A DNA stretch of 64,000 nucleotides. It comes from Dendrobates tinctorius. Its lineage: Eukaryota. The notes under the pieces are model-generated. The model did not search any database and was not told the origin of the DNA. It was given only the letters and a program-made list of their open reading frames with translations. The position numbers were made by a program, and so were the translations under genes. The DNA is taken from positions 12,152,001-12,216,000 of the forward strand of contig NW_027361759.1 of assembly GCF_039654945.1 (NCBI RefSeq). Reading direction: 5' to 3'. Of the stretch, positions 1,111 through 61,477 are shown piece after piece (the first letter of the stretch is position 1; the number at the start of each line of letters is the position of its first letter).

Positions 1111-1194
1111 TATGCATCCTCCATTCTTACATATAGGTCCCTCATCCTGCCCCAATCCTGGTATATATGTCCCCATTCTGCCACTGTTCTTTAA

Positions 1195-3714
1195 CCCCTT
1201 AACGACCGCCGATACGCCTTTTAACGGCGGTAGTTAAGGGTACTAAAACCACAGCGCCGTTCATACACGGCGCTGTGATTTAAGTGAATAGCGCCCCCCA
1301 GTGTTGGATTTTCTCCGGGGTCTCGGCTGCCAGGGGTAGCCGAGACCCCAGAGAACATGAATCGGTCGGTTTTTACCGACCCCGCTTTTGCGATTGCTGT
1401 TATTAACCCTATAACGGCGACTGCAAAAAAAAAAGCCGCGATTTTACATTCAATTTCTCTCTCCTCTGATGTGATCGCATATCAGAGGGGAGAGAAATAG
1501 AGTCCCCGATCCCCCCCGGTACCTCTCCGTGGCCCTCCGTCCCCTCCCGATGGTCCCACGTCCTGCCGGCATCCTCCGATGGGCGCCGCCATCTTGAAAA
1601 TGGCGGGCGCATGCGCAGTGCGCCCGCCGGGAATCTGGCTCCGGCTGGCAGATTCCATTCATTATTTTGATCACTATGATAAACGATCATAGTGATCAAA
1701 ATAAAAAAATAGTACATAACCCCCCCCCCCGTTTATCACCCCCTTATATAGGCAAATATAATGAAATACAGAAAATATTTTTTTTTTCAGTTTTCCATTA
1801 GGGTTAGGGTTGGGCTAGGGTTAGGGTTAGGGTTAGAGTTGGGGTTGGGTTAGGGCTAGGGTTAAGGTTAGGGTTGGGGCTAGGGTTAGGGTTAGGGTTG
1901 GGCTAGGGTTAGGGTAGGGTTAGGGTTGGGCTAGGGTTAGGGTTGGGCTAGGGTTAGGGTTGGGCTAGGGTTAGGGCTAGGGTTAGGGCTAGGGTTAGGG
2001 TTAGGCTAGGGTTAGGGCTAGGGTTAGGGCTCAGGTCACGGCTAGGGTTAGAATTAGGGTTAGGGCGAACTAGGATTAGGGTTAGAATTAGGATTAGGGA
2101 TTAGGGTTGGGATTAGAGTTAGGGTTGGGATTAGGGTTAGGGGTGTGTTGGGGTCAGGGTTGGAGCAAGAATTGAGGTGTTTCCATTATTTACCAACTTT
2201 GGGGGTCTAAAAATTGGGGTCTAAAAAATCACTTTTGTGGAAATAAAAAAGACTTTTTATTTTCACGGCTCTGCGTTTATAAACTTTTGTGAAGCACTTT
2301 TTATTAAAAAGTATGATTTTTTATTTTTACGGCTCTATGTAATAAACTTCTGTGAAGCACTTGGGGGTTCCAAGTGCTCACCACACATCTAGATAAGTTC
2401 CTTAGGGGGTGTAATTTCCAAAATGGGGTCACTTGTGGGGGGTTTCCACTGTTTAAGCCCATCAGGGGCTCTGCAAATGCAACATGATGTCCGCAGACCA
2501 TTCCATCAAAGTCTGCATTCCAAAATGGCACTCCTTCCCTTCCGAGCTCTCCCATGCGCCCAAACAGTGGTTTCCCCCCACATATGGGGTATCAGCGTAC
2601 TCAGGACAAATCGCACAACAACTGAGCGGGTATGATTTCTCCTGTTACCCTTGTAAAAATAAAAATTTGGGGGCGAAAAGATCATTTTTGTGTGGAAAAA
2701 AATAGATTTCTTATTTTCACGGCTCTACGTTATAAACTTCTGTGAAGCACTTGAAGATTCAAAGTGCTCACCACACATCTAGATAAGTTCCTTAATGGGT
2801 CTAGTTTCCAAAATGGGGTCACTTGTTGGAGTTTTCCACTGTTTAGGCACATTAAGGGCTCTCCAAACGCAACATGGCATCCGATCTCAATTCCAGTCAA
2901 TTCTGCGTTGAAAAAGTCAAACGGCGCTCCATCCCTTGCGAGCTCTGCCGTGTGCTGAAAAAGTGGTTTACCCCCACATATGGGGTATCGGCGTATTCAG
3001 GAGAAATTGTACAACAAATTTTGTGGTTGATTTTCTCTTTTAATACTTGTGAAAATAAAAAAAATTGGTTCTGAAGTAAATTTTTTGCAAAAAAAAAGTT
3101 AAATGTTAATTTTTTCCTTCCACATTGCTTTAGTTCCTGTGAAGCACTTAAAGGGTTAATAAACTTCTTGAATGTGGTTTTGAGCACCTTGAGGGGTCTA
3201 GTGTTTAGAATGGTGCCACTTTTGGGTATTTTCTGTCATGTACACCCCTCAAAATGACTTTAAATATGATGTGGTCTCTAAAAAAAATGGTTTTGTAAAT
3301 TTTGTTGTAAAAATGAGAAATCGCTGGTCAAATTTTAACCCTTATAACTTCCTAACAAAAAAAAATTTTGCTTCCAAAATTGTGCTGATGTAAAGTAGAC
3401 ATGTGGGAAATGTTATTTATTAAGAAATTTGCGTGACACATCTCTCTGATTTAAGGGCATAAAAATTTAAAGTTTTAAAATTGCAAAATTTTCTATATTT
3501 TCGCCATATTTCCGTTTTTTTCATAAATAAACACAAGACTTATCGAAGAAATTTTACCACTAACATGAAGTACAATATGTCACAAAAAAAATATCTTAGA
3601 ATCAGCGGGATCCATTAAAGCGTTCCAGAGTTATAACCTCATAAAGGGACAGTGGTCAGAATTGTAAAAATTGGCCTGGTCGTTAAGCTGCAAACTGGCT
3701 CTGTCGCTAAGGGG
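1195..3714. mobile_element. Non-autonomous TTAA-specific (piggyBac-type) DNA element, copy 1
   Basis: TTAA at 1191-1194 and 3715-3718. TIRs CCCCTTAACGAC / GTCGCTAAGGGG (11/12). No transposase ORF. Internal telomere-like tract and ~390-bp units. Confidence 0.85.
1797..2160 (+). repeat. Degenerate telomere-like (TTAGGG/CTAGGG/TTGGG)n tract
   Basis: Dozens of TTAGGG and variant hexamers in tandem. Confidence 0.95.
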
Positions 3715-4704
3715 TTAAGGTATAGAAGAAAATAAATAATTATACTTACCAGGGGTGTACATAGAAGTCATGGGGCTCCATATAAGAAGTATAATGCACA
3801 CCCAAGGTCCTCCATATAGTAACATGCATCCCATAGTCCTCCATTTAATATACTGTACAGCCCATAGTCTTCCATGTAGTATAATGCGCAGCACATAATC
3901 TTCCAAAAAAGAACAGGGTGGGCCATTTATATGGATACACCTAAATAAAATGGGAATGGTTGGTGATATAAACTTCCTATTTGTGGCACATTAGTATATG
4001 GGAGGGGGAAAACTTTTCAAGATGGGTGGTGACCATGGTGACCATTTTGAAGTTGGCCATTTTGGATCCAAATTTATTTTTTCCAATGGAAAGAGGGTCA
4101 TCTGACACATCAAACTTACAGTATTGAGAATTTCACAAGAAAAACTATGGTGTGATTGGTTTTAACGCAACTTTATTCTTTCATGAGTTATTTACAAGTT
4201 TATTACCACTTATAAAATGTGTTCAAATTGCTGCCCATTGCGTTGGTATGTCAATGCAACCCTCTTCTCCCACTCTTGACACACTGATAGCAGCACAGCA
4301 GAAGAAATGCTAGTCTAAGGAGGTCAGATTCCTTGTAGGAATGCTCAGACCTGACACCCATTGTGTGTTGGTGCACCATCTTGCTGGAAAAACTCAGGAA
4401 ACGTGCCATCTTCAGTGCATAAAGAGGGCAACACATCATCAGGTAGCAATTTCAGATATCCAGTGGCATTGAGGTTTCCATTGATGAAGAATGGCCCCAC
4501 TATCTTTGTACCCCATATATCACACCATACCATCAATTATGGGTGTCAGGTCCAAGCATTCCTACATGAACAGTCTCCTGGAAAGTGGATTGGTCATCGC
4601 TGGCCAGTTAAATGGCCACCAAGGTCTCCTGATCTGACCCCCTCAAACTTTTATCTTTGGGGTCATCTGAAGGCAATCGTCTATGCTGTGAAGATACGAG
4701 ATGT

Positions 4705-12987: not shown

Positions 12988-13581
12988 GGGCCCCGTCACA
13001 CATAGCGACTCACCAGCGATCCCAACAACGATATCAACTTGTCAGGATCGCTGGTGAGTCGCTACATGATCGCTGGTGAGCTGTCAAACAGACAGCTTCA
13101 CCAGCGATCAGCACCAGCGACGCCAAGCACGCGGCGTCGCTGTGTACTTTAGTTACCAGCACGCTGATGCAGGGAGCTGGTAACTAAGGTACACATCGGG
13201 TTTCTAAGGGGCGTGCGTCACTTAGAAACCCGAAGTGTACCTTGGTTACCAGCTCCCTGCATCAGCGCGCTGGTAACTAAGGTACACATCAGGTTTCTAA
13301 GCACCGCCCGGTGCTTAGAAACCCTGCGTTTACCTTAGTTACCAGCGCGCTGATCGCTGGTCTCCTGCCTGTCACACACAGTGATGCATGCTGGCCAGCG
13401 GGAGACCAGCGATCAAAAAAATGTCCTGGCTATTCCAGGACGATCAGCGATAACCGGCAGGGGGGCCGGTCGCTGGTCAGTGTCACACACAGCGATCTCG
13501 ATGGTGAGATCGCTGTTGCGTCACAAAACTTGTGACTCAGCAGCGATCTCGCTAGCGAGATCACTAAGTGTGACGGGGGCT
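12988..13581. mobile_element. PIF/Harbinger MITE (palindromic)
   Basis: TIR GGGCCCCGTCACAC / GTGTGACGGGGGCT with TTA TSD. Removal restores the integrase frame VL..HHDSVLAGHPG. Confidence 0.85.
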
Positions 13582-14216
13582 TTAGCTAACATCATGATTC
13601 AGTGTTGGCCGGACATCCTGGTAATAAAGCCACCGCTGATCTTCTTAATCGGCATTTTTGGTGCCAGGTGCTCATCAGGGTGTCCAGGTGTATGTAGCCA
13701 CTTGCAGTTCTGTGCGCATTCTAAGACCTCTCATACTCACCGGTCGAGGTCTCTCCAACCGTTGGAGATTCCCAGTAGACCTTGGACTCACTTGTCAGTC
13801 AATTTTATCACAGATCTTCCCGTGTTGGTAGTGAATACTGTAATACTGGTGGTGGCAGATAGATTCAGTAAAATGTCTCATTTTATCGCATTACCAGCTT
13901 TACTGAACGCCAAATTCTTGGCGCAAGTTTTTGGCAGGGAAATAACTAGATTACATGGGATCCCAACCGATATTGTTTCTGATCAGGTGGTGCAGTTTGT
14001 CTCCAATTTTTGGAGGGCCTTTTGCACCCACGTAGGGATGCCGTTGTCATTTTCTTCTGCATTTCACCCACAGTCTAATAGGCAGACTGAACGAGTTAAC
14101 CAGAATCTAGAGACGTGTCTCAGGTGTTTTGTATCTGAAAATCTGGAGGACTAGGTTACCTATTTACCGTTAGCTGAATTTGCTGTAAATAATCATTGTC
14201 AGGAATCAACCGTTAA

Positions 14217-31089: not shown

Positions 31090-31460
31090 GGCGGGGTCTG
31101 TACGGGCCTCTCAGGGGCCTATGCAGGCCTCTCGGGGGTCTGTGCGGGCCTGCTGGGGCCTGTACGGGCCTCACGGGGGTCTACGCGGGCCTGCCCGGGG
31201 CCCTGTGCGGGCATGCCGGGGCCCGTACGGGCCTCTCAGGGGTCTATGCGGGCCTGCCGGGGCCCTGTGCGTGCCTGCCAGGGCCTGTACGGGCCTCTCG
31301 GGCGTCTATGCGGGCCTGCTGGGGCCCTGTGCGGGCCTGCCGGGTCCTGTATGGGCCTCTCAGGGGTCTATGCGGGCCTGCCGGGGCCCTGTGAGGGCCT
31401 GCCGGGGCCTGTACGGGCCTCTCGGGGGTCTATGCGGGCCTGCCAGGGGTCTGTGCAGGC
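31090..31460. repeat. GC-rich minisatellite (GGGCCTGCCGGGGCC-type), inverted partner at 36585-37030
   Basis: Short tandem units; reverse-complement array on the other arm of the hAT element. Confidence 0.9.
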
Positions 31461-36202: not shown

Positions 36203-38171
36203 TATGTATGTAGTATGTATGAATGTAGTATGTATGTAGTATGTATGTATGTTGTATGAATGTAGCATATATGAAGCATGTACGTAGTATGTAGTATGTA
36301 TGCATGTTGTATGAATGTAGTATATATGTAGTATGTATGTAGTATGTATGTATGTTGTATGAATGTAGTATATATGAAGCATGTATATAGTATGTATGTT
36401 GTATGAATGTAGTATGTATGTAGTATGTATGTATGTAGTATGTATGTTTTTTTTTTATATTCAACACATTAGCCGGATGATGGGACTACTGCTGTCCCAT
36501 CATTGGCTAATGTGTCAATCACTGTCATTGTATCAGGCATCGCCCGATGGGACTTGTAGTCCCATCGGACGATGCCTGCACAGACCCCCGGCAGGCCCTC
36601 ATAGACCCCCAAGAGGCCCGTACAGGCCCCGGCAGGCCCTCACAGGGCCCCGGCAGGCCCGCATAGACCCCCAAGAGGCCCGTACAGGCCCCCGACAGAC
36701 GACACAGGCCCCCGTCAGGCCCGTACAGGCCCCGGCAGGCCCGCACAGGGCCCCAAAAGGCCCGTACAGACCCCTGACAGCTGGCACAGGCCCCCGGCAG
36801 GCCCGTACAGACCCCAGCAGGCCCGCACAGGGCCCCGGCAGGCCCGCATAGACCACCGAGAGGCCCGTACAGGCCCCCGACAGCCGGCACAGACCCCCGG
36901 CAGGCCCGTACAGGCTCGCACAGGGCCCCGGCAGGCCCGCATAGACCCCCCGAGAGGCACGTACAGGCCCCCGACAGCCGACACAGGCCCCCGGCAGGCC
37001 CGTACAGGTCCCCTGCAGTCGGCACAGACCGCGCATCATGATGACATCATTTCAGCAGCCAAGCACAGCCACAACAATTATGGGGATTTCCAATTCCGGT
37101 ATCCGATATTGAAAAAATATCAGTACTCGGTATCGGAATTCCGATACAGCGAATATCGGCCGATACCCGATATTTGCAGTATCGGAATGCTCAACACTAC
37201 CTATGACGCTCTCGGGGTCCAGACGTGTGACCGTGCAAAATTTTGTGGCTGTAGCTGCGACGGTGCAGATACCAATCCCGGACATACACACATACATACA
37301 TACAAACATACACACACACACACACACACATTGAGCTTTATATATTAGATGGGGAGATGAAGTCAAACCTGTTTATTTACCGTATGATTGTTTTTGACTT
37401 AAGAGCTTGCAGATATTTTTTCTTACATCTGAAAGAAATAAAGGTACCCACAAATCATTGTTGCATCATTGGCAAATTGAGTCTTAAACAAAACTCTTTG
37501 GTTTTGTTACTGGGTCATTAGCTTTCGCTATTCCTAAATAAGAGATCATTCTTGCTTTTTCTATGACAGTTCACTTAAATATTTTAGAGTAGGACTGAAA
37601 AGGAATCCACTATAGCTACAAGACAATTTGCAGTGTATTAAAAAGGATGCAGTTCTAGTGAGGATTTGTGAAGATATCAGAAACAAAGCTCAAATAATGG
37701 TTTCATCAGAAATAAAAATGATTGAAAAAGACCAAAGAACTCCAATTCAGGGCCAAGTTGAAGGCTCTCTCCTAATGAGCCTTCCTGCATGGGGAATCAA
37801 TTCGGGCAAAGCTCCTTGGGGCACTGTCAATCATGAAAAGGGTAGTGGTGAAGGTTGGGGGGCAGAGCAGTGCACCAAGCACTTGGCAATGCCATGAGTG
37901 CACCGATGAAGAAGTTCTAAACTTGGAAACAAGTTAACTAATAAACCACATTCTTTGGATTCCTGTCTTCTCATCATCCTTCCATGGCAGGACATTTTAA
38001 CCCATTTGATTCTATTTTTAGTTTGCCCCAATTATATAAAAGTATCATGTATGACCTAGCAACATGTAAGGATGTGCCCTCACAACATGCAATATCTACG
38101 AAATCTTTATGACTTATTTGATTGTTTATTTACGATTTGAGTGGTGAAAGTCACGATCGGTGGACCACATA

Positions 38172-47301: not shown

Positions 47302-48906
47302 CAGTGGGGCAAAAAAGTATTTAGTCAGTCAGCAATAGTGCAAGTTCCACCACTTAAAAAGATGAGAGGCGTCTGTAATTTACATCATAGGTAGACCTCA
47401 ACTATGGGAGACAAACTGAGAAAAAAAAATCCAGAAAATCACATTGTCTGTTTTTTTTCATTTTATTTGCATATTATGGTGGAAAATAAGTATTTGGTCA
47501 GAAACAAAATTTCATCTCAATACTTTGTGATATATCCTTTGTTGGCAATGACAGAGGTCAAACGTTTTCTGTAAGTCTTCACAAGGTTGCCACACACTGT
47601 TGTTGGTATGTTGGCCCATTCCTCCATGCAGATCTCCTCTAGAGCAGTGATGTTTTTGGCTTTTCGCTTGGCAACACGGACTTTCAACTCCCTCCAAAGG
47701 TTTTCTATAGGGTTGAGATCTGGAGACTGGCTAGGCCACTCCAGGACCTTGAAATGCTTCTTACGAAGCCACTCCTTCGTTGCCCTGGCGGTGTGCTTTG
47801 GATCATTGTCATGTTGAAAGACCCAGCCACGTTTCATCTTCAATGCCCTTGCTGATGGAAGGAGGTTTGCACTCAAAATCTCACGATACATGGCCCCATT
47901 CATTCTTTCATGTACCCGGATCAGTCGTCCTGGCCCCTTTGCAGAGAAACAGCCCCAAAGCATGATGTTTCCACCACCATGCTTTTCAGTAGGTATGGTG
48001 TTTGATGGATGCAACTCAGTATTCTTTTTCCTCCAAACACGACAAGTTGTGTTTCTACCAAACAGTTCCAGTTTGGTTTCATCAGACCATGGGACATTCT
48101 CCCAAAACTCCTCTGGATCATCCAAATGCTCTCTAGCAAACTTCAGACGGGCCCGGACATGTACAGGCTTAAGCAGTGGGACACGTCTGGCACTGCAGGA
48201 TCTGAGTCCATGGTGGCGTAGTGTTTTACTTATGGTAGGCCTTGTTACATTGGTCCCAGCTCTCTGCAGTTCATTCACTAGGTCCCCCCGCGTGGTTCTG
48301 GGATTTTTGCTCACCGTTCTTGTGATCATTCTGACCCCACGGGGTGGGATTTTGCGTGGAGCACCAGATCGAGGGAGATTATCAGTGGTCTTGTATGTCT
48401 TCCATTTTCTAATTATTGCTCCCACAGTTGATTTCTTCACTCCAAGCTGGTTGGCTATTGCAGATTCAGTCTTCCCAGCCTGGTGCAGGGCTACAATTTT
48501 GTTTCTGGTGTCCTTTGACAGCTCTTTGGTCTTCACCATAGTGGAGTTTGGAGTCAGACTGTTTGAGGGTGTGCACAGGTGTCTTTTTATACTGATAACA
48601 AGTTTAAACAGGTGCCATTACTACAGGTAATGAGTGGAGGAAAGAGGAGACTCTTAAAGAAGAAGTTACAGGTCTGTGAGAGCCAGAAATCTTGATTGCT
48701 TGTTTCTGACCAAATACTTATTTTCCACCATAATATGCAAATAAAATGAAAAAAAAACAGACAATGTGATTTTCTGGATTTTTTTTTCTCAGTTTGTCTC
48801 CCATAGTTGAGATCTACCTATGATGTAAATTACAGACGCCTCTCATCTTTTTAAGTGGTGGAACTTGCACTATTGCTGACTGACTAAATACTTTTTTGCC
48901 CCACTG
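47302..48906 (-). mobile_element. Full-length Tc1 (IR/DR type), copy B
   Basis: ~200-bp TIRs starting CAGTGGGGCAAAAAAG, TA TSD, near-identical to copy A. Confidence 0.96.
47517..48539 (-). CDS. ORF-intact 340-aa DD34E Tc1 transposase
   Basis: WSDETK, FQHDND and SPDLNPIEN with 34-residue D-E spacing; GAPR and HTH motifs. Confidence 0.95.
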
Positions 48907-51690: not shown

Positions 51691-54600
51691 GAGAAGGTGG
51701 AAATAGAAGTCCTGCAGAAGGAATACGAACATGCAGCAGCTGTGGCAAAGCTAAAGGTCTTCGAGCAGGCTCTAGGTGGGAGCCAAGGAGGCAGCATCAA
51801 TTCGTATGAACTCGACATGGAAGACCCACTTAAGTGCACAAGAAATTATGTGCTGAGTCAAACCAACGAATCCCTGACCACCAACAACATTCCCGTCAGC
51901 ACCCATCTCTCTCTAGAGCATCAGGACGTCGATCCGCCTGCACATTCTAGCTTTCACGGTCAGTCAAATGAACCACAAACATTCAAACCCGAACCTTCTT
52001 CATGTGTCAGTACACGGCCTGACCCTACACCTCAGCCAGTGCCATACACCAACATGCAACATGCAACCTAACATGCCGACAAGGCACTGCGCTCCTCATA
52101 ACTGTGTGGTTCCAGTCCTGCATACAACAGAGATCATATGCCACAAACCGGTTGCTGGTCTAAACGCCTACGCCACTCCATATCTTCCCATGTTCTTGAA
52201 CCAAGAAGCTAAGACCCACGCTAACAGCATCACTCAGCCGGCAAATGTTACTCCAAAGTCAGAAAGAACAGACATGGCCGAATTTGCGAGGCTAATGTTA
52301 CGCCGAGAACTCACCAACACCGGTCTCACAAGGTTCGACGGCCAGCCTGAGAATTACAGAGGTTGGAAATATACCTTTAAAGCCGCAATTAGTGACCTCG
52401 GCATCACTGCTGCTGAAGAGCTGGATCTGCTAATCAGGTGGCTCGGACCTCAATCCATGGAGCGGGTTAAGAGGCTCAGATCCGTCCACATCAGTAATTT
52501 AGCAGCTGGTCTCATGGCTGCATGGGAAAGACTAGAATGTAGCTTTGGCAGTCCTGAAGCCATAGAGAATGCACTGTTTAAGCATCTACAGGAAGTTCAA
52601 AATTCCTAGAGCTCAGTGACCTACTCCTAGAGCTCCAGTTAGCCAAGGCAGACACGGACCTACCTGGTCTTAGCTACCCGGATACCGCTAGTGGCGTTAA
52701 CTCAATAGTCTCAAAGCTGCCATACAATATACAAGAGAAGTTGGCCACTATTGGATCAAAGTACAAAAAAGCCAATCAAGTCTCCTTTCCTCCATTTTCC
52801 TACTTCTGTGACTTTATCAAGGATATCGCAGAGCGTAAGACCGACCCAAGTTTTTCCTATGTAGAACCCAGCGGACCCGGTCCAACTCCTCCTAATTATG
52901 AGGGTCCACGTACTAACCTGAAAAGCCAAAGAGGCCCAGTGTCAGCGAAAAAGATCGACATCCTTCCCACACCTACATCAGCTCCAAACCAGAGCAACAC
53001 AGGGGACAAGGTTGAAGATCCTAATCGTATGTGTCTCATTCATAAGAAGCCACATCCCTTAAAGAAGTGCATTGGCTTCAGAAAGAAGCCGCTCCACAAA
53101 CGCAAGGAACTTCTAAAGACCTTTGGTGTATGTTGCAGATGTTGTGCTTCTACTGAACACTTTGCTAATGACTGTAAAATTCCTATTAAGTGTTTGGATT
53201 GTGACAGTGAGGACCACGTGCAAGCACTCCATACATCCCAGCCTACCTCTGCTCAGCTCACACCTTCCATACCCACCACAAGCTATGGCGGAGAGGAAAC
53301 AGAGCAAGCAAGTACTACCAAGGTATCATCTTCATGCACAGAAGTTTACGGAGAAGACCTCTGGGACAAGTCATGTGCAAAGATATGCCTGGTGAACATA
53401 TATCCTAAGGGTCAGCCCGAAAAGGAACTTCTAAAGACCTTTGGTGTATGTTGCAGATGTTGTGCTTCTACTGAACACTTTGCTAATGACTGTAAAATTC
53501 CTATTAAGTGTTTGGATTGTGACAGTGAGGACCACGTGCAAGCACTCCATACATCCCAGCCTACCTCTGCTCAGCTCACACCTTCCATACCCACCACAAG
53601 CTATGGCGGGGAGGAAACAGAGCAAGCAAGTACTACCAAGGTATCATCTTCATGCACAGAAGTTTACGGAGAAGACCTCTGGGACAAGTCATGTGCAAAG
53701 ATATGCCTGGTGAACATATATCCTAAGGGTCAGCCCGAAAAGAGCACAAGGGTGTACGCCATCATGGACGATCAAAGCAACCGATCACTTGCAAGGTCAG
53801 AGCTCTTTGATTTGATTTAAAAGGAAATGCTTACCCCTACACCTTGGGTACTTGCAGTGGTGTCACAGAGGTCTCTGGGAGAAGAGCCAATGGACTTATA
53901 GTATCTTCACTTGAGAACAACGTAGAGATACCTCTGCCTACACTCGTCGAGTGCAACCAGATACCATCCAATAGAGAGGACATTCCAACGCCAGAGATTG
54001 CTCTTCATCACCCTCATCTAATGACGATAGCCAACAAGATACCAGCTCTTGACAACAGTGCAGATATCCTGATCCTGCTCGGTAGAGACATTCTCCGACT
54101 GCATAAGGTACGTCAGCAGATCAATGGACCACATGATGCTCCATTTGCTCAACGCTTTGATCTAGGCTGGGTTATCATAGGCAACGTCTGTATAGACAAG
54201 ATGAAGAGGCCTACAAAGATTTACTCATGTAAGACTCATGTCTTGCCAAATGGTCGAAGTACATACTGTCAACCAAGCCCACATCACTACTGGGTGAAAG
54301 AAACACTGAGTGACTGTAAGCGGCAGCTAGAAACCTATGACAACATGAATATATTCTGGTCCTGTGACGAAAACCTCAGGTCAACGGTGTTTGATTCTAC
54401 AAATGAAAATAACAAGTTGGCACCAGCAAGAGAGGACAAAGAATTCATTAAGGTCATTAACAAGGAATTTACCCAGGATGACTCCAACAACTGGACAGCA
54501 CCCTTACCCCTTCATTCTCCAAGGACAAGTTTGCCAAACAATCTGCAGCAAGCAACTGCAAGACTTGCATCTTTAAAACGAACTTTAACCCCTTACCTAC

Positions 54601-56036
54601 AATGGACGTAATATTCCATCGATGTGACCCTGGACCTAATTACCATGGACGGAATATTACGTCCCAGCGATCAGCGGCGCCCACGTGGTGAGCGCCGCTG
54701 ATCGCGGCCGGGTGTCAGCTGATTATCACAGTTGACACCCGGAACAATGTGTCAGGGGCGGTCACGGACCGCCCCCGACACGTTAACCCCTTGTACACCG
54801 CGATCAAACGCGATCGCGGTGTACCGGGGGTTAAAGGGAAGCATCGGCAGGGAGGTGGCTCCCTCCTTGCTTCCCTGAGCCCCCCACAGCAGCGCTGCTG
54901 CGTGGGTCTCTTTCCCTACAGGCCCCCGGATCCAAGATGGCGACGGGGGCCTTCGGGGGCCTGTAGGGAGCTGACTTCCTCACTGCCTGCAAAGCGCAGG
55001 CATGAGGAAGTCTGCAGAACTGCCTGTGACAGATTGCTGATCTGTCACAGTGATCTGTGATGTGACAGATCAGCGATCTGTCACAGGACAGTGATGTCCC
55101 ACGTGGGACAAGGTAATAAAGTAAAAAAAAAAAAAAGTGTTAAAAATAATTTTAAAAAAATCGCTAAATAAATTAGTAAAAAAAAAAAATATTCCCTAAT
55201 AAATCCATTTTTTCAAAATAAAAAAAATAAAATAAATAAAAGTACACATATTTGGTATCGCCGCGTCCGTAGCGACCCGCCCTATAAAACTGTCCCATTA
55301 GTTAACCCCTTTAGCGAACCCCTTAAAAAATAAAAATAAAAAACGAAGCAAAAAATAATGATTTATTATCATACCACCGAACAAAAAGTGCAATAACGCG
55401 CGATCAAAAAGACACATATAAATATCCATGGTACCGCTGAAAACGTCATCTTGTCCCGCAAAAAACGAGCCGCCATACAGCGTCATCCGCAAAAAAATAA
55501 AAAAGTTATAGCTCGCAGAATAAAGCGATACAAAAATAATTATTTTTTATATAAAATTATTTTCATTGCAAAAAACCGACAAAACATAAAAAAACGGCCA
55601 AAATGAGGTATTGCTGTAACCGTACTGACACGAAGAATAAAAACACTTTATCAATTTTACTGCACGCGGAACGGTGTAAACGCACCCCCCAAAAGAAATT
55701 CATGAAACGCTGGTTTTTGTTCATTCTGCGTCCCAAAAATCGGAATAAAAAGCGATCAAAAAAGTCACATGCCCGAAAATGGTACCAATGAAAACGTCAA
55801 CTCGTCCCGCAAAAAATAAGACCTCACATGACTCGGTGGGTCAAAATACAGAAAAATTATAGCTCACAATATGTGGTGATGCAAAAACTATTTTACAATT
55901 AAAAGCGTCTTTTAGCGTCTGACAGCTGCCAAACATAAAAACCGCCATAAATAGTAAATCAAACCCCCGTTATCACCCCCTTAGTTAGGGAAAAATAATA
56001 AAACTAAAAGAAAATGTATTTATTTCCATTTTCCCA

Positions 56037-56130
56037 TAAGGGTTAGGGTTAGGGTTAGGGCTAGGGTTAGGGCTAGGGTTAGGGTTAGGGCTAGGGCTCA
56101 GATTAGGGTTAGGGGTGTGTTGGGGTTAAA
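56037..56130 (+). repeat. Telomere-like (TTAGGG/CTAGGG)n tract
   Basis: About a dozen hexamers. Confidence 0.95.
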
Positions 56131-56149
56131 GTTGGAGTTATAATTGGGG

Positions 56150-59100
56150 GGTTTCCACTGTTTGGGCACATCAGGTGCTTTCCAAAGGCAACATGGCGTC
56201 TGATCTCAATTCCAGCCAATTCTGCATTGAAAAAGTCAAATGGTGCTCCTTCCCTTCCAAGCTCTGCCATGCGCCCAAGCAGTGTTTTACCCCCACATAT
56301 GGGGTATCAGCCCACTCAGGACAAATTACAAAACAACTTTTGGGGTCCAATTTCTCCTGTTACCCTTAGGAAAATAAAAAATTGGGGGCAAAAATATCAT
56401 TTTTACGGAAAAAAATGATTTTTTTATTTTCACGCCCAGGCGTTATAAACTTCTGTGAAGCACTTGGGGGTTCAAAGTGCTCACCACACATCTAGATAAG
56501 TTCCGTGGGGGGTCTAGTTTCCAAAATTGGGTCACTTGTGGGGAGTTTCAATAGTTTAGGTACATCAGGGGCTCTCCAAACGCACATGACACCCGCAGAC
56601 CAATCCATCAAAGTCTGCATTCCAAAACGTTACTACTTCCCTTCCGAGCCCCGACGTGTGCCCATACAGTAGTTTTCTCACACATATGAGGTATCAGCGT
56701 ACTCAGGACAAATTAGACAACAACTTTTGGGGTCCAATTTCTCCTGTTACCCTTGGGAAAATAAAAAAAAATGGGGACTAAAAGGTGATGTTTGTTGAAA
56801 AAATACGATATTTTTATTTTCACGCCCGGTCGTTATAAACTTCTGTGAAGCACTGGGGGGTTCAAAGTGCTCACCACACATCTAGATAAGTTCATTAGGG
56901 GGTCTAGTTTCCAAAATGGGTCACTTGTGGGGGGTTTCTACTGTTTAGGTACATCAGGGGCTCTCCAAACGCACATGACACCCGCAGACCAATCCATCAA
57001 AGTCTGCATTCCAAAACGTCACTACTTCCCTTCCGAGCCCCGACATGTGCCCATACAGTAGTTTTCTCACACATATGAGGTATCAGCGTACTCAGGACAA
57101 ATTCGACAACAACTTTTGGGGTCCAATTTCTCCTGTTACCCTTGGGAAAATAAAAAAATGGGGACTAAAAGGTGATATTTGTTGAAAAAATACGATATTT
57201 TTATTTTCATGCCCGGTCGTTATAAACTTCTGTGAAGCACTGGGGGGGTTCAAAGTGCTCACCACACATCTAGATAAGTTCATTAGGGGGTCTAGTTTCC
57301 AAAATGGGGTCACTTGTGGGGGGTTTCTACTGTTTAGGTACATCAGGGGCTCTCCAAAAGCAACATGACACCCGCAGACCATGCCATCAAAGTCTGCATT
57401 CCAAAACATCACTACTTCCCTTCCGAGCCCGACATGTGCCCATACAGTAGTTTTCTCCCACATATGAGGTATCAGCGTACTCAGGACAAATTGGAAAACA
57501 ACTTTTGGCATCCAATTTCTCCTGTTACCCTTGGGAAAATAAAAAAAAATTGGAGACTAATTGATCATGTTTGTGGAAAAAATACGATTTTTTTATTTTC
57601 ATGCCTGGGCATTATAAACTTCTGTGAAGCCCTTGGGGGTTCAAAGTGCTCACCACACATCTAGATAAGTTCCACAGGGGGTCTAGTTTCCAAAATTGGG
57701 TCATTTGTGGGGGGTTTCCACTGTTTAGGTACATTAGGGGCTCTCCAAAGGCAACATGACACCCGCAGACCATTCCATCAAAATCTGCATTCCAAAATGT
57801 CACTACTTCCCTTCCGAGCCCCGACGTGTCCCCATACAGTAGTTTTCTCCCACATATGGGGTGTCAGCGTACTCAGGAAAAATTGGACAACAGCTTTTGG
57901 GGTCCAATTTCTGCTGTTACCCTTGGGAAAATAAAAAAAATGGGGACTAAAAGATGATGTTTGTGGAAAAAATACGATTTTTTTATTTTCACGCCCGGGC
58001 GTTATAAACTTCTGTGAAGCACTCAGGGGTTTAAAGTGCTCACCACACATCTAAATAAGTTCCTTGGGGGGTCTAGTTTCCAAAATGGTGTCATTTGTGG
58101 GGGGTTTCTACTGTTTTGGTACATCAGGGGCTTTCCAAACGCGACATGGTGTCCGATCTCAATTCCAGCCAAAAACGTCAAATGGTGCTGCTTCCCTTCC
58201 GAGCTCTGCCATGCGCCCAAATAGTGGTTTACCCCCACATGTCGGGTATCAGCGCAGTCAGGATAAATTGCACAATATCTTTTAGGGCCCTGTTACTCTT
58301 GGAAAAATAAGAATTGAGGGTGAAAAGATCATTTTTGTGGAAAAAATATGATTTTTTAATTGTACGGCTGTATGTTATAAACTTCTGTGAAGCCCTTGGG
58401 GGTTCAAAGTTCTCACCACACATCTAGATAAGTTCCTTGGGGGGGCCTAGATTCCAAAATGGTGTCATTTGTGGGGGGTTTCCACTGTTTTGGTACATCA
58501 GGGGTTTTCCAATCGCGACATGGTGTCCGATCTCAATTCTAGCCAAAAACGTCAAATGGCGCTGCTTCCCTTCCAAGCTCTGCTATGCGCCCAAATAGTC
58601 ATTTACACCCACATATGGGGTATCAGCCTACTCAGGACAAATTGCACAATAACTTTTAGAGTCTTGTTACCCTTGGAAAAATAAAAATTGGGGGTGAAAA
58701 GATCATTTTTGTGGAAAAAATATGATTTTTTAATTGTACCGCTGTACGTTATAAACTTCTGTGAAGCCCTTGTGGGTTCAAAGTTCTCACTACATATCTA
58801 GATAAGTTCCTTGGGGGGTCTAGTTTCCAAAATGGGGTCACTTGGGGGGGTTTCCACTGTTTAGGTACATCAGGGGCTCTCCAAACGCGACATGGCGTCC
58901 GATCTGAATTCCAGCCAATTTTGCATTGAAAAAGTCAAACGGTGCTCCTTCCCTACTGAGGTCTGCCATGCGCAGAAACAGTGGTTCCCCTCCACATATC
59001 AGGTATCAGCGTACTCAGGACAAATTGCACAATAACTTTTGCAGTCCAATTTCTCCTGTTACCCTTGGTAAAATAAAGAAAATTGAACCTGAAGTATTTT
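56150..59100 (+). repeat. Tandem array of ~390/374-bp units
   Basis: Marker TCTAGATAAG at 56491, 56881, 57269, 57660, 58050, 58423 and 58797. Confidence 0.95.
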
Positions 59101-61477
59101 TTTTGTGAAAAAAAGTTAAATGTTAATTTTTTTTTTAAATATTCAAAAAATTCCTGTGACGCACCTAAAGGGTTAATAAACTTTTTGAATGTGGTTTTGA
59201 GCACCTTAAGGGGTGCAGTTTTTAGAATGGTGTCACTTTTGGGTATTTTCTATCATACAGACCCCTCAAAGTGGCTTCAAATGTGATGTGGTCCCTAAAA
59301 ATAAAATGGTGCTGCAAAAATGAGAAATCGCTGGTCAACTTTTAACCCTTATAACTTCCTAAAAAATAAACATTTTGGTTCCAAAATTGTGCTGATGTAA
59401 AGTAAACATGTGGGAAATGTTATTTATTAAGTTTTTTGTGTGCCGTATCGCTGTGATTTAAGGGCATAAAAATTCAAAGTTGGAAAATTGCAAAATTTTC
59501 AAAATTTTCGCCAAATTTCCATTTTTTTCACAAATAAACGCAAGTTATTTGAATGCAATTTTACCACTAACATGAAGTACAATATGTCATGAGAAAACAG
59601 TGTCAGAATCACAGGGATCCATGGAAGCGTTTCAGAGTTATGACCTCATAAAGGAACAGTGGTCAGAATTGTAAAAATTGGCCCGGGAGTTAACGTGCCA
59701 ACCACCCTTCGTAGTGAAGGGGTTAAAAATGAAACCAGAGATGGAAAAACATTTCCTCGACTTCATGCAGAATATTTTTGATAGAAATCATGCAGAGCCT
59801 GCTCCACAACTAAAGGAAGGAGAAGAATGCTGGTATCTTCCATTCTTTGGTGTCTACCATCCTCGCAAACCCAATCAAATCAGAGTGGTGTTTGACTCCA
59901 GTGCCCAGTATGAAGGTATTTCTCTCAATAACCTGCTCCTCACCGGACTCAACCTGAACAATAGTCTCATAGGCGCCTGCAAAGAACTTCAGCTTGATCA
60001 TTTCTTAACCGACAATGAGTGAGCTTGGGTGTTCAACCCCCCAACATTCATCGCATACGGGAGGATCCTGGGAGCGCATGATTGGAATTGCACAAAGAAT
60101 TCTTGATTCAATGCTGCTGGACCACAAGCTGCCACTCACCCATGAAGACTTGGTCACCTTCCTCGCGGAAGTGTCTGCAATAATAAATGCCAGACCGCTG
60201 GTGCCGGTATCGTCGGACCCTGATGCCCCAATGATCCTTACACCAGCAACTCTTCTTACACAGAAAATTGGAACCGCCACAATTCCTCCTGGAAATTTCA
60301 ACCTCAAGGACATGTACAGACGTCAGTGGAAGCAGGTACAACACCTGTCTAATGTCTTTTGGCACCGTTGGAAGACGGAATACCTGCATCTGCTCCAGAG
60401 CCGTCACAAATGGCAGACAGCAAAACCTAACCTCCAAGAAGGAGACCTCGTCCTCCTAAAAGACAAAGAAGCTTATCGCAATGACTGGCCAATGGGTCTT
60501 ATCACCAAGGCTATGCCCAGTGAGGATGGAAAGACCCGAAAGGTGGAAGTCAAGGTAACAAAAGGTGGTTCATCACGACTTCTCCTTCGCCCAGTCACCG
60601 AACTTGTACTGCTTCTACCAAAGGAGGACATCACATAAAAGATATTTCTACTGGACACAGCTCACAATGGAGAGCATACCGACATACACCCTTAACTGTC
60701 AAGAACTTGAAATTCATCTTTGGATTGTTTGGGTTGGTGAAAGTGTTGGCACGTTGCGGCTTCCCCAATCTGAAGATAGGTTCTCCTATGGACTTGGACT
60801 ATCCATCCGTTGAGGACTTCACGTCATCAACCAAGAATTGGACTTGCAACTGTTAGAGTTTATTTTCATGTTGTGTTTCTTCTTTTTTTTGTCTTCCAGG
60901 CTTCTAGGACGCCGTTGATCATCATCGTGACACGTCATGTCAAGTTGAATCATCATGAAATCTAAAGATTTCAGACGGGGAGTGTCATGTCCCATGATTT
61001 TGAATCATCAGACAGTACTGCATTTTATCATATTGTTGTTTCCATTGCTGTATATAGATCTGTTCCTTTTAGAGGTTTTCTCCTCCCCCCTTGCATGTGA
61101 CTCTCATTTCTGTAACCCCTCCCTTCTTCTCCATTTTTGAGTCTTCTCTATCTTGGAGACACACGTTTATACAGCTCTGTACAAGGAAAATCTCTTTTTA
61201 CCTACTGTAACGTGCATTATGCAAGGATTCAGCCGAGAATAAACCTTCTACTGGACTCTTCAAACTTGGTCTTTTCAGTCGAGTTTAAATTATCTGCGGA
61301 CATCACTAAATGTGAGTAACGGTCAACAGACTCCATGGGTTGGCAGTCTGAGCGCCCACACACTTACAGTTTGGCCATGAGGCAGAATAGATAGTAAATA
61401 CTAACACACTAACCAACCTATTATAAAATATGATAAAATTCTGATTAAGAAACACTGATAAAACCTTGAAAGTTTGT

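Follow-up and report, generated by a model that had tools for sequence, protein, structure and literature searches.

How does a telomere-like tract come to lie in the interior of a chromosome? For frogs, as for other vertebrates, an internal TTAGGG signal is routinely taken as a relic of chromosome fusion or as the mark of a mended break. The question is raised anew by a stretch of 64,000 nucleotides from Dendrobates tinctorius (RefSeq assembly GCF_039654945.1, contig NW_027361759.1, positions 12,152,001 to 12,216,000, forward strand; the whole stretch is called the window below). All runs of at least two (Y)TAGGG units in the window fall inside two insertions bounded by TTAA, which we call copy 1 (1195-3714) and copy 2 (54589-59722). 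An earlier note on this DNA had proposed that the tract belongs to a mobile unit and is not a chromosome-fusion scar. Both claims stand: the two insertions lie at unrelated sites and share the leader before the tract, the sequence after it, its direction and its internal landmarks. The best explanation, to which we give a probability of about 0.8, is that both are copies of one abundant, non-coding, non-autonomous TTAA transposon family within which the tract is passed on as a module.

The limits of the two insertions are exact to the base on direct reading, and a TTAA stands immediately outside each of the four ends (Table 1). Both copies start with CCCCTT and end with AAGGGG. These are the two full-length copies that were read; together they make up 12% of the window, and at 2.5-5.1 kb they are large for an element resembling MITEs (miniature inverted-repeat transposable elements). 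Neither contains an open reading frame (ORF) of at least 150 amino acids, which indicates that the element is non-autonomous. The insertions are independent, as had been supposed: their flanks have no similarity to each other or to the rest of the window. No paralogous empty site is present within the 64-kb window. Evidence for the insertion site comes instead from a long reading frame that copy 2 splits. Its upstream piece has 248 open codons and reaches the left TTAA; after the right TTAA the frame resumes with 97 open codons, in the phase expected when the element and one TTAA are removed. The continuity of phase across a single TTAA supports insertion at TTAA. By its motifs the interrupted frame may be read as a retroelement-like pol; a Pfam scan of the ORF pieces flanking copy 2 matched no family. 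The host repeat to which the frame belongs is present in contigs of all four organisms considered below, at coverage far below that of the element, and in several of its contigs the match breaks off a few bases short of the TTAA and the contig itself goes on for another 130-160 nt. Such contigs would fit uninterrupted paralogues of the site, which is not proof of them.

Table 1. Features of the two copies and of their insertion sites, in window coordinates.
Feature	Coordinates	Strand	Remarks
TTAA target-site copy, left of copy 1	1191-1194	.	Read directly; same as 3715-3718
Copy 1 left arm	1195-1710	+	Terminal repeat CCCCTTAACGACCGCC and GC/CpG-rich cluster of 5 stem-loops
Copy 1 leader	1708-1797	+	Start of the shared module; aligned to 55950-56038
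Copy 1 telomere-like tract	1798-2161	+	G-rich strand on +; period 6 (Tandem Repeats Finder)
Copy 1 389-bp-type units	2162-3060	+	About 2.3 units; 78-85% identity to copy 2 units (BLAST)
Copy 1 tail	3061-3682	+	Aligned to 59084-59682
Copy 1 right terminal segment	3683-3714	+	Internal TTAA, inner repeat GGTCGTTAAG, terminal ...TCGCTAAGGGG
TTAA target-site copy, right of copy 1	3715-3718	.	Read directly
Interrupted host reading frame, upstream piece	53844-54587	+	Open to TTAA; no Pfam family
TTAA target-site copy, left of copy 2	54585-54588	.	Read directly
Copy 2 left arm, part a	54589-55115	+	Terminal repeat CCCCTTACCTACAATGG and GC-rich cluster of 7 stem-loops
Palindromic mini-element, 52 bp	54783-54834	.	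TTAA-CCCCTTGTACACCGCGATC...GATCGCGGTGTACCGGGGG-TTAA; inverted-repeat arms 23 nt, 91% complementary
Copy 2 left arm, part b	55116-55949	+	A-rich, CpG-rich; absent from copy 1
Copy 2 leader	55950-56038	+	Aligned to copy 1 leader; copy-1-like junction contigs break at 55964
Copy 2 telomere-like tract	56039-56135	+	56039-56114 by Tandem Repeats Finder, degenerate units to about 56135
Copy 2 389-bp unit array	56136-59083	+	About 7.5 units; period 389 (Tandem Repeats Finder)
Copy 2 tail	59084-59682	+	Aligned to copy 1 tail
Copy 2 right terminal segment	59683-59722	+	Internal TTAA, terminal ...CGTAGTGAAGGGG
TTAA target-site copy, right of copy 2	59723-59726	.	Read directly
Interrupted host reading frame, downstream piece	59729-60019	+	Open; predicted phase

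From the leader onward the two copies have one order and one direction of parts (leader, telomere-like tract, 389-bp units, tail), as found by Tandem Repeats Finder (TRF), BLAST and alignment. In a BLAST comparison of copy 1 with the window, 1,393 bp of units and tail align to copy 2 at 82.5% identity (E=0), and there is no match outside the two copies. The two copies become alike about 90 bp ahead of the tract (from 1708 in copy 1, from 55950 in copy 2) and cease to be so about 35 bp short of the right end, at an internal TTAA (3683 and 59683). Identity between the copies is 79% in the leader, 83% in the post-tract sequence and 85.5% in the tail. A closely similar right end had been described; this holds for the tail, over 599 bp, and fails for the last ~30 bp, where the two terminal segments are 56% identical, a value that is not significant. 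The first unit of copy 1 is partly deleted and contains a 63-bp local duplication, with anchor spacings of 63 and 390 nt. For copy 2, TRF reports a period of 389 over 56249-59083 (7.3 copies, 86% matches). Units 1-4 of this array are mutually 92-97% alike, which points to local amplification; their identity to units 5-7, and to the copy 1 units, is only about 80%. The first ~200 bp of the copy 1 tail read, by eye, as a decayed 389-bp unit.

The tract itself is found at close to the lengths first estimated (about 360 and 95 bp), with 364 bp in copy 1 and 76-97 bp in copy 2. TRF counts 62 repeat copies with 74% matches over the 364 bp of copy 1, and 12.7 copies with 82% matches over 76 bp of copy 2. 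The tract of copy 1 has 25 TTAGGG and 12 CTAGGG, and that of copy 2 has 8 TTAGGG and 3 CTAGGG. Both tracts are decayed, the longest perfect run being three units, and the G-rich strand of both runs the same way relative to the tail. They also have details in common. The variant dimer CTAGGGTTAGGG occurs ten times in the tract of copy 1 and twice in that of copy 2, a single GGGCTCAG marks each tract (at 2027 and 56094), and an identical 25-mer, ATTAGGGTTAGGGGTGTGTTGGGGT, closes both (at 2130 and 56102). Variant landmarks inside a tract are not something that telomerase would reproduce. The shared landmarks thus indicate that the tract was inherited with the element and is neither a local product of telomerase nor a relic of fusion; the tracts of the two copies are homologous by descent.

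Short interstitial telomeric sequences (ITS) are usually explained in another way, as reviewed in PMC9693754: each would be specific to its locus, made by telomerase during break repair or left by a fusion, and its presence in an element here would be a coincidence. An ITS of this origin has locus-specific flanks and arises separately at each site. What is found instead is the same position, direction, flanks and internal landmarks in two insertions at unrelated sites. In the tract of copy 1, moreover, mutated units are arranged in runs of higher-order repeats 12 and 17 nt long, which argue for local amplification rather than synthesis by telomerase, and the junction of leader and tract is covered family-wide in four organisms. 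A coincidence of this kind is therefore extremely improbable.

The family is very abundant and occurs in several species. The data on this point are assembled DNA contigs only; their pieces are not copies, and their depth is not copy number. Words of the region 2170-3900, which comprises units, tail and right flank, occur at shares of 0.22-0.72 in 24 DNA runs; these runs come from 9 studies and represent 8 coded organisms. Contigs of four of the 8 were aligned, at a likeness of at least 80%, to 54300-56051, a region that ends 12 nt into the tract of copy 2. The left 1.75 kb of copy 2 attracts 67,987, 58,714, 43,322 and 46,486 contig pieces per run, and in organism A 8,117 pieces are at least 99% alike. 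Summed coverage is 10^2-10^3 on the host-repeat flank and about 10^6 on the element. The A-rich arm and the leader (55244-56051) have equal coverage in all four organisms, the A-rich part b best of all. The bin that spans the leader's end and the first 12 bases of the tract is covered as the leader is in the four organisms, and no pile of loose ends at the leader-tract junction is seen among the best-supported entries listed. Coverage is uneven farther to the left: for the stem-loop sub-part 54831-55125 it is good in organism A alone, and in the other three it falls 100- to 1000-fold. Contigs break recurrently before 55964 (29 contigs in X1 and 43 in X9), and their consensus, ...AAAATAAAAAAA..GTAAATCAAAC, has the arrangement of copy 1, in which the last stem-loop abuts the leader with no A-rich arm between. 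The recurrence of this junction indicates that copy 1 represents a short-arm subfamily and is not a one-off deletion. Exact-pattern scans of metagenome contigs, with a leader pattern and with a 24-mer of the tail, found nothing.

To what kind of transposon does the family belong? All four outer termini share CCCCTT(A/C)NC(G/T)AC. By hand count, the terminal 16 nt of copy 1 match its own left end at 12/16 positions and the terminal 17 nt of copy 2 match its own at 13/17. A co-varying pair of ends in each copy was considered and dropped, since the cross-copy matches (10/16 and 12/17, also by hand count) nearly equal those within copies. The ends and targets point to a cut-and-paste element of the TTAA type, an assignment that is more secure than its placement in the piggyBac superfamily. 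Both sites rebuild a full TTAA, which favours a TTAA duplication over one of TA or TTA. The TTAA target and the C...G ends together suggest that the element is piggyBac-like, and we hold this to be somewhat more probable than even. A TTAA duplication, as in piggyBac, is present on both sides of both copies. According to the published rule, piggyBac elements have TTAA and 12-19-bp terminal repeats beginning CCYT (PMC5601938), and the end motif has been given as C[C/A/T][C/A/T][T/G/A][T/A/G][T/G/A] (PMC5381638); in the present element the terminal G and bases one to three agree with the rule, the fourth base, C, departs from it, and the repeats are imperfect. Like known non-autonomous piggyBac-like elements, it combines a TTAA duplication with short imperfect C...G terminal inverted repeats and no coding capacity. 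In copy 1 the end motif recurs about 15 nt inward of the right terminal repeat, which is reminiscent of the asymmetric subterminal repeats that T. ni piggyBac has (PMC5381638). Unlike elements that follow the rule of PMC5601938, it begins with CCCCTT instead of CCYT, reaches 2.5-5.1 kb and has a telomere-like microsatellite and a satellite in its interior. A Pfam scan of ten long ORFs of the window revealed no piggyBac transposase.

Two other superfamilies come into consideration. Kolobok elements likewise target TTAA (PMC6004289), but the ends of Kolobok and its T2-MITE relatives begin with AG/AGGRR (PMC6004289), whereas the termini here start with CCCC and finish with GGGG. PIF/Harbinger elements duplicate TTA or TAA, and a 3-bp TTA duplication with the ends shifted by one base would give the same empty-site string. 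A full TTAA at both empty sites is, however, expected by chance from a TTA target in only about 1 case in 10, and a Harbinger-type TTA duplication is less likely. When the ends are drawn symmetrically, the 3-bp TWA expected of this superfamily appears as a flanking TAA and TTA, which are no direct repeat. The C...G termini fit piggyBac, and membership of the family in another superfamily is quite unlikely.

The part of the element that varies is the left arm. As the earlier note had stated, the left arms of the two copies differ: BLAST finds no match between them, they are 44.5% identical in a global alignment (shuffles: 41.6 +/- 1.9%), and the z-score of their local alignment is about 0 on either strand. 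What they have in common is secondary structure. The left arm of copy 1 has five stem-loops in 516 bp, with arms of 19-24 nt, and part a of the left arm of copy 2 has seven in 527 bp, where dinucleotide shuffles give an expectation of 0.05 for each; over both left arms the stem-loop arms are 13-27 nt long. Stem-loops in the tail and in the A-rich arm are absent or at chance numbers. Left arms that are unrelated, and yet are both stem-loop clusters, suggest that the family is a mosaic. Base composition varies along the element as well. GC content and the observed/expected ratio of CpG are 53% and 1.16 in the left arm of copy 1, 59% and 0.78 in part a of copy 2 and 33% and 1.91 in its A-rich part b; the CpG ratio is 0.47-0.55 in the units, the tail and the whole window (window 0.49). 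Part b contains an internal, diverged duplication of ~352 bp (55382-55465 and 55734-55816 are 75% identical). It is an abundant old repeat, yet its CpGs are kept.

The stem-loop clusters may be transposase-binding regions, relics of mini-elements or promoter-like cargo. One stem-loop in the left arm of copy 2 is a nested 52-bp palindrome (54783-54834), whose CCCCTT...GGGGG ends are of the same kind as those of the large element; it has the look of a transposon of this type reduced to little more than its ends. A promoter-like role is suggested because the left arms are GC-rich, keep their CpGs, contain YY1-type sites and lie upstream of the G-rich strand of the tract in both copies. A YY1-like GCCGCCATCTT is at 1585 on the minus strand of copy 1, next to an NRF1-type palindrome, GCGCATGCGC, at 1607 (the two together span 1585-1616), and a YY1-like AAGATGGCGAC is at 54934 (54934-54944) on the plus strand of copy 2. 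With one mismatch allowed, the YY1-type 11-mer AAGATGGCGGC is matched once in each left arm and nowhere else in the window; the two AAGATGGCG(G/A)C sites are in opposite orientation, within arms that otherwise cannot be aligned. If the left arm were a mobile promoter-like cassette, it might give UUAGGG-containing RNAs, similar to telomeric repeat-containing RNA (TERRA), from thousands of internal sites. We consider this very unlikely. Alternatively, the stem-loop clusters could feed small-RNA pathways. A search of the left arm of copy 2 with Rfam gave only sub-threshold, generic matches to microRNA hairpins.

Several points weigh against reading the two copies as members of one piggyBac-like family with a fixed tract. 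At its fourth base the terminal repeat has C, and published piggyBac motifs expect T, G or A there. TTAA is palindromic, so that the sequence alone is compatible with a duplication of TTA or TA. The superfamily was assigned from the target and the ends. Fixation of the tract across the family was probed at the leader junction alone, by contigs, and in two full copies. Finally, the sharp loss of similarity at both ends also fits a core that is nested in two host elements. In such a composite two different small stem-loop elements of the TTAA kind would each have gained the core, by its landing or by capture, about 30 bp short of their right end, and the family would be defined by its cargo rather than by its vehicle. 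The borders of similarity are indeed abrupt, at ~1708 and 55950 on the left and at the internal TTAA (3683 and 59683) on the right, with 56% identity beyond, and the left arms are at the identity level of shuffles. The stem-loop sub-parts of copy 2 vary 100- to 1000-fold in coverage among organisms, which the A-rich arm and the leader do not, and a 52-bp TTAA-bounded mini-element with like ends lies in the left arm. The core, however, has neither a TTAA nor an end like a terminal repeat at its left border, and its right border does not end in GGG. The four termini share the motif CCCCTT(A/C)NC(G/T)AC, with cross-copy matches near those within copies, and so do not clearly derive from two vehicles; nor do the contigs have a step in coverage at the internal end-like motif at 55302. 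A nested composite is thus unlikely, and a single TTAA family with an inherited tract remains the reading that we prefer.

How such a family might arise and spread can be outlined as follows. The element most likely depends on a piggyBac-type transposase whose gene lies elsewhere in the genome and which acts on it in trans. The core of the family would be a fixed series of modules, namely the leader, the degenerate (TTAGGG/CTAGGG)n tract, the 389-bp array and the tail, and the 389-bp units may be derived from the tail. The tract would be an ordinary internal microsatellite that is passed on with the element, and both it and the 389-bp array would change in length by slippage and unequal exchange. 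Every new insertion would then seed a short ITS, with no fusion and no telomerase at the site. The left subterminal region would be a replaceable module, made up of differing GC/CpG-rich stem-loop clusters with or without the A-rich segment. Its replacement could occur by chimerism between subfamilies, for example through template switching in gap repair or through capture of the core by related TTAA vehicles.

Elements with a similar plan are known from other animals. The DTC84, pearl and CvA elements of bivalves (PMC3879986) have a left flank with short inverted repeats, a microsatellite at one end of an array of core tandem repeats, and a right flank; as here, the number of core repeats varies between copies and the flanks behave as a cassette. 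They differ in their putative AA duplication, in transposon type and in their flanks and ends (PMC3879986), and their microsatellite is not the telomere motif of the host, nor is their unit nearly as long as 389 bp. The modular plan is shared, and an AA duplication and related flanks are missing here, so the likeness is one of architecture only. Closer in host are Xmix and Xstir of Xenopus (T2-MITE, Kolobok), in which an inner segment of a non-autonomous TTAA element of a frog has been amplified into a tandem family; their ends are AGGRR, and no telomere-type tract is reported for them (PMC6004289). Short ITS from telomerase-assisted repair or fusion (PMC9693754, PMC8537989) resemble the present tract in being short, degenerate and internal (TTAGGG)n sequences. 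Unlike these, the tract is inherited inside a transposon, and its flanks are conserved on both sides.

The window contains further mobile and repeated DNA. An intact ORF of 340 amino acids on the minus strand (47517-48539) encodes a Tc1/Sleeping-Beauty-type transposase with HTH_SB, HTH_Tnp_Tc3_2 and DDE_3 domains. Its identity is 96-98% with gene models of Ranitomeya imitator (GCA_958301615.1) and 84-91% with copies from fish (Hemibagrus, Hucho, Oncorhynchus); the exact protein of the window is not on record. The identity between frog and fish is unusually close, which suggests possible horizontal transfer of this transposase. A GC-rich array with a period of 62 bp at 31092-31460 has its reverse complement in another at 36574-37030. 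A large inverted structure, which had been described as a fold-back Tc1, is bracketed by these two and by (GTAT)n-type arrays at 31.9-32.2, 33.8-34.6 and 36.2-36.4 kb. The plus-strand ORF at 13381-14154 is part of another retroelement and matches the integrase core domain (rve, E = 7.6e-07). In the retroelement-like ORF upstream of copy 2, a 318-bp segment occurs twice at 99% identity (53104-53742), and the translation has a cysteine-rich, knuckle-like motif.

The spread of ITS by transposons has been proposed before, by Azzalin et al., Nergadze et al. and Bolzan (as cited in passages of PMC9693754) and by Bolzan and Bianchi (as cited in a passage of the anuran study PMC6803351). A search of the literature found no sequence-level description of a transposon-borne ITS for frogs. 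The element described here is a case, at the level of sequence, of this already proposed third route to ITS, beside fusion relics and mended breaks. Its tracts contain 28 YTAGGGTTR half-sites in copy 1 and 6 in copy 2, and 9 and 2 non-overlapping four-run G-tract motifs, respectively. It is plausible, though the tracts are short and decayed, that they would confound telomere fluorescence in situ hybridization, and binding by TRF1/2 and formation of G-quadruplexes, both predicted, are plausible too. A dispersed signal from a telomere probe, or a count of ITS, need not mirror karyotype history in these genomes, and annotation of ITS should begin by masking this family. More generally, the family is a clear vertebrate case of a transposon with both a microsatellite and a satellite, and as such it bears on how satellites are seeded.

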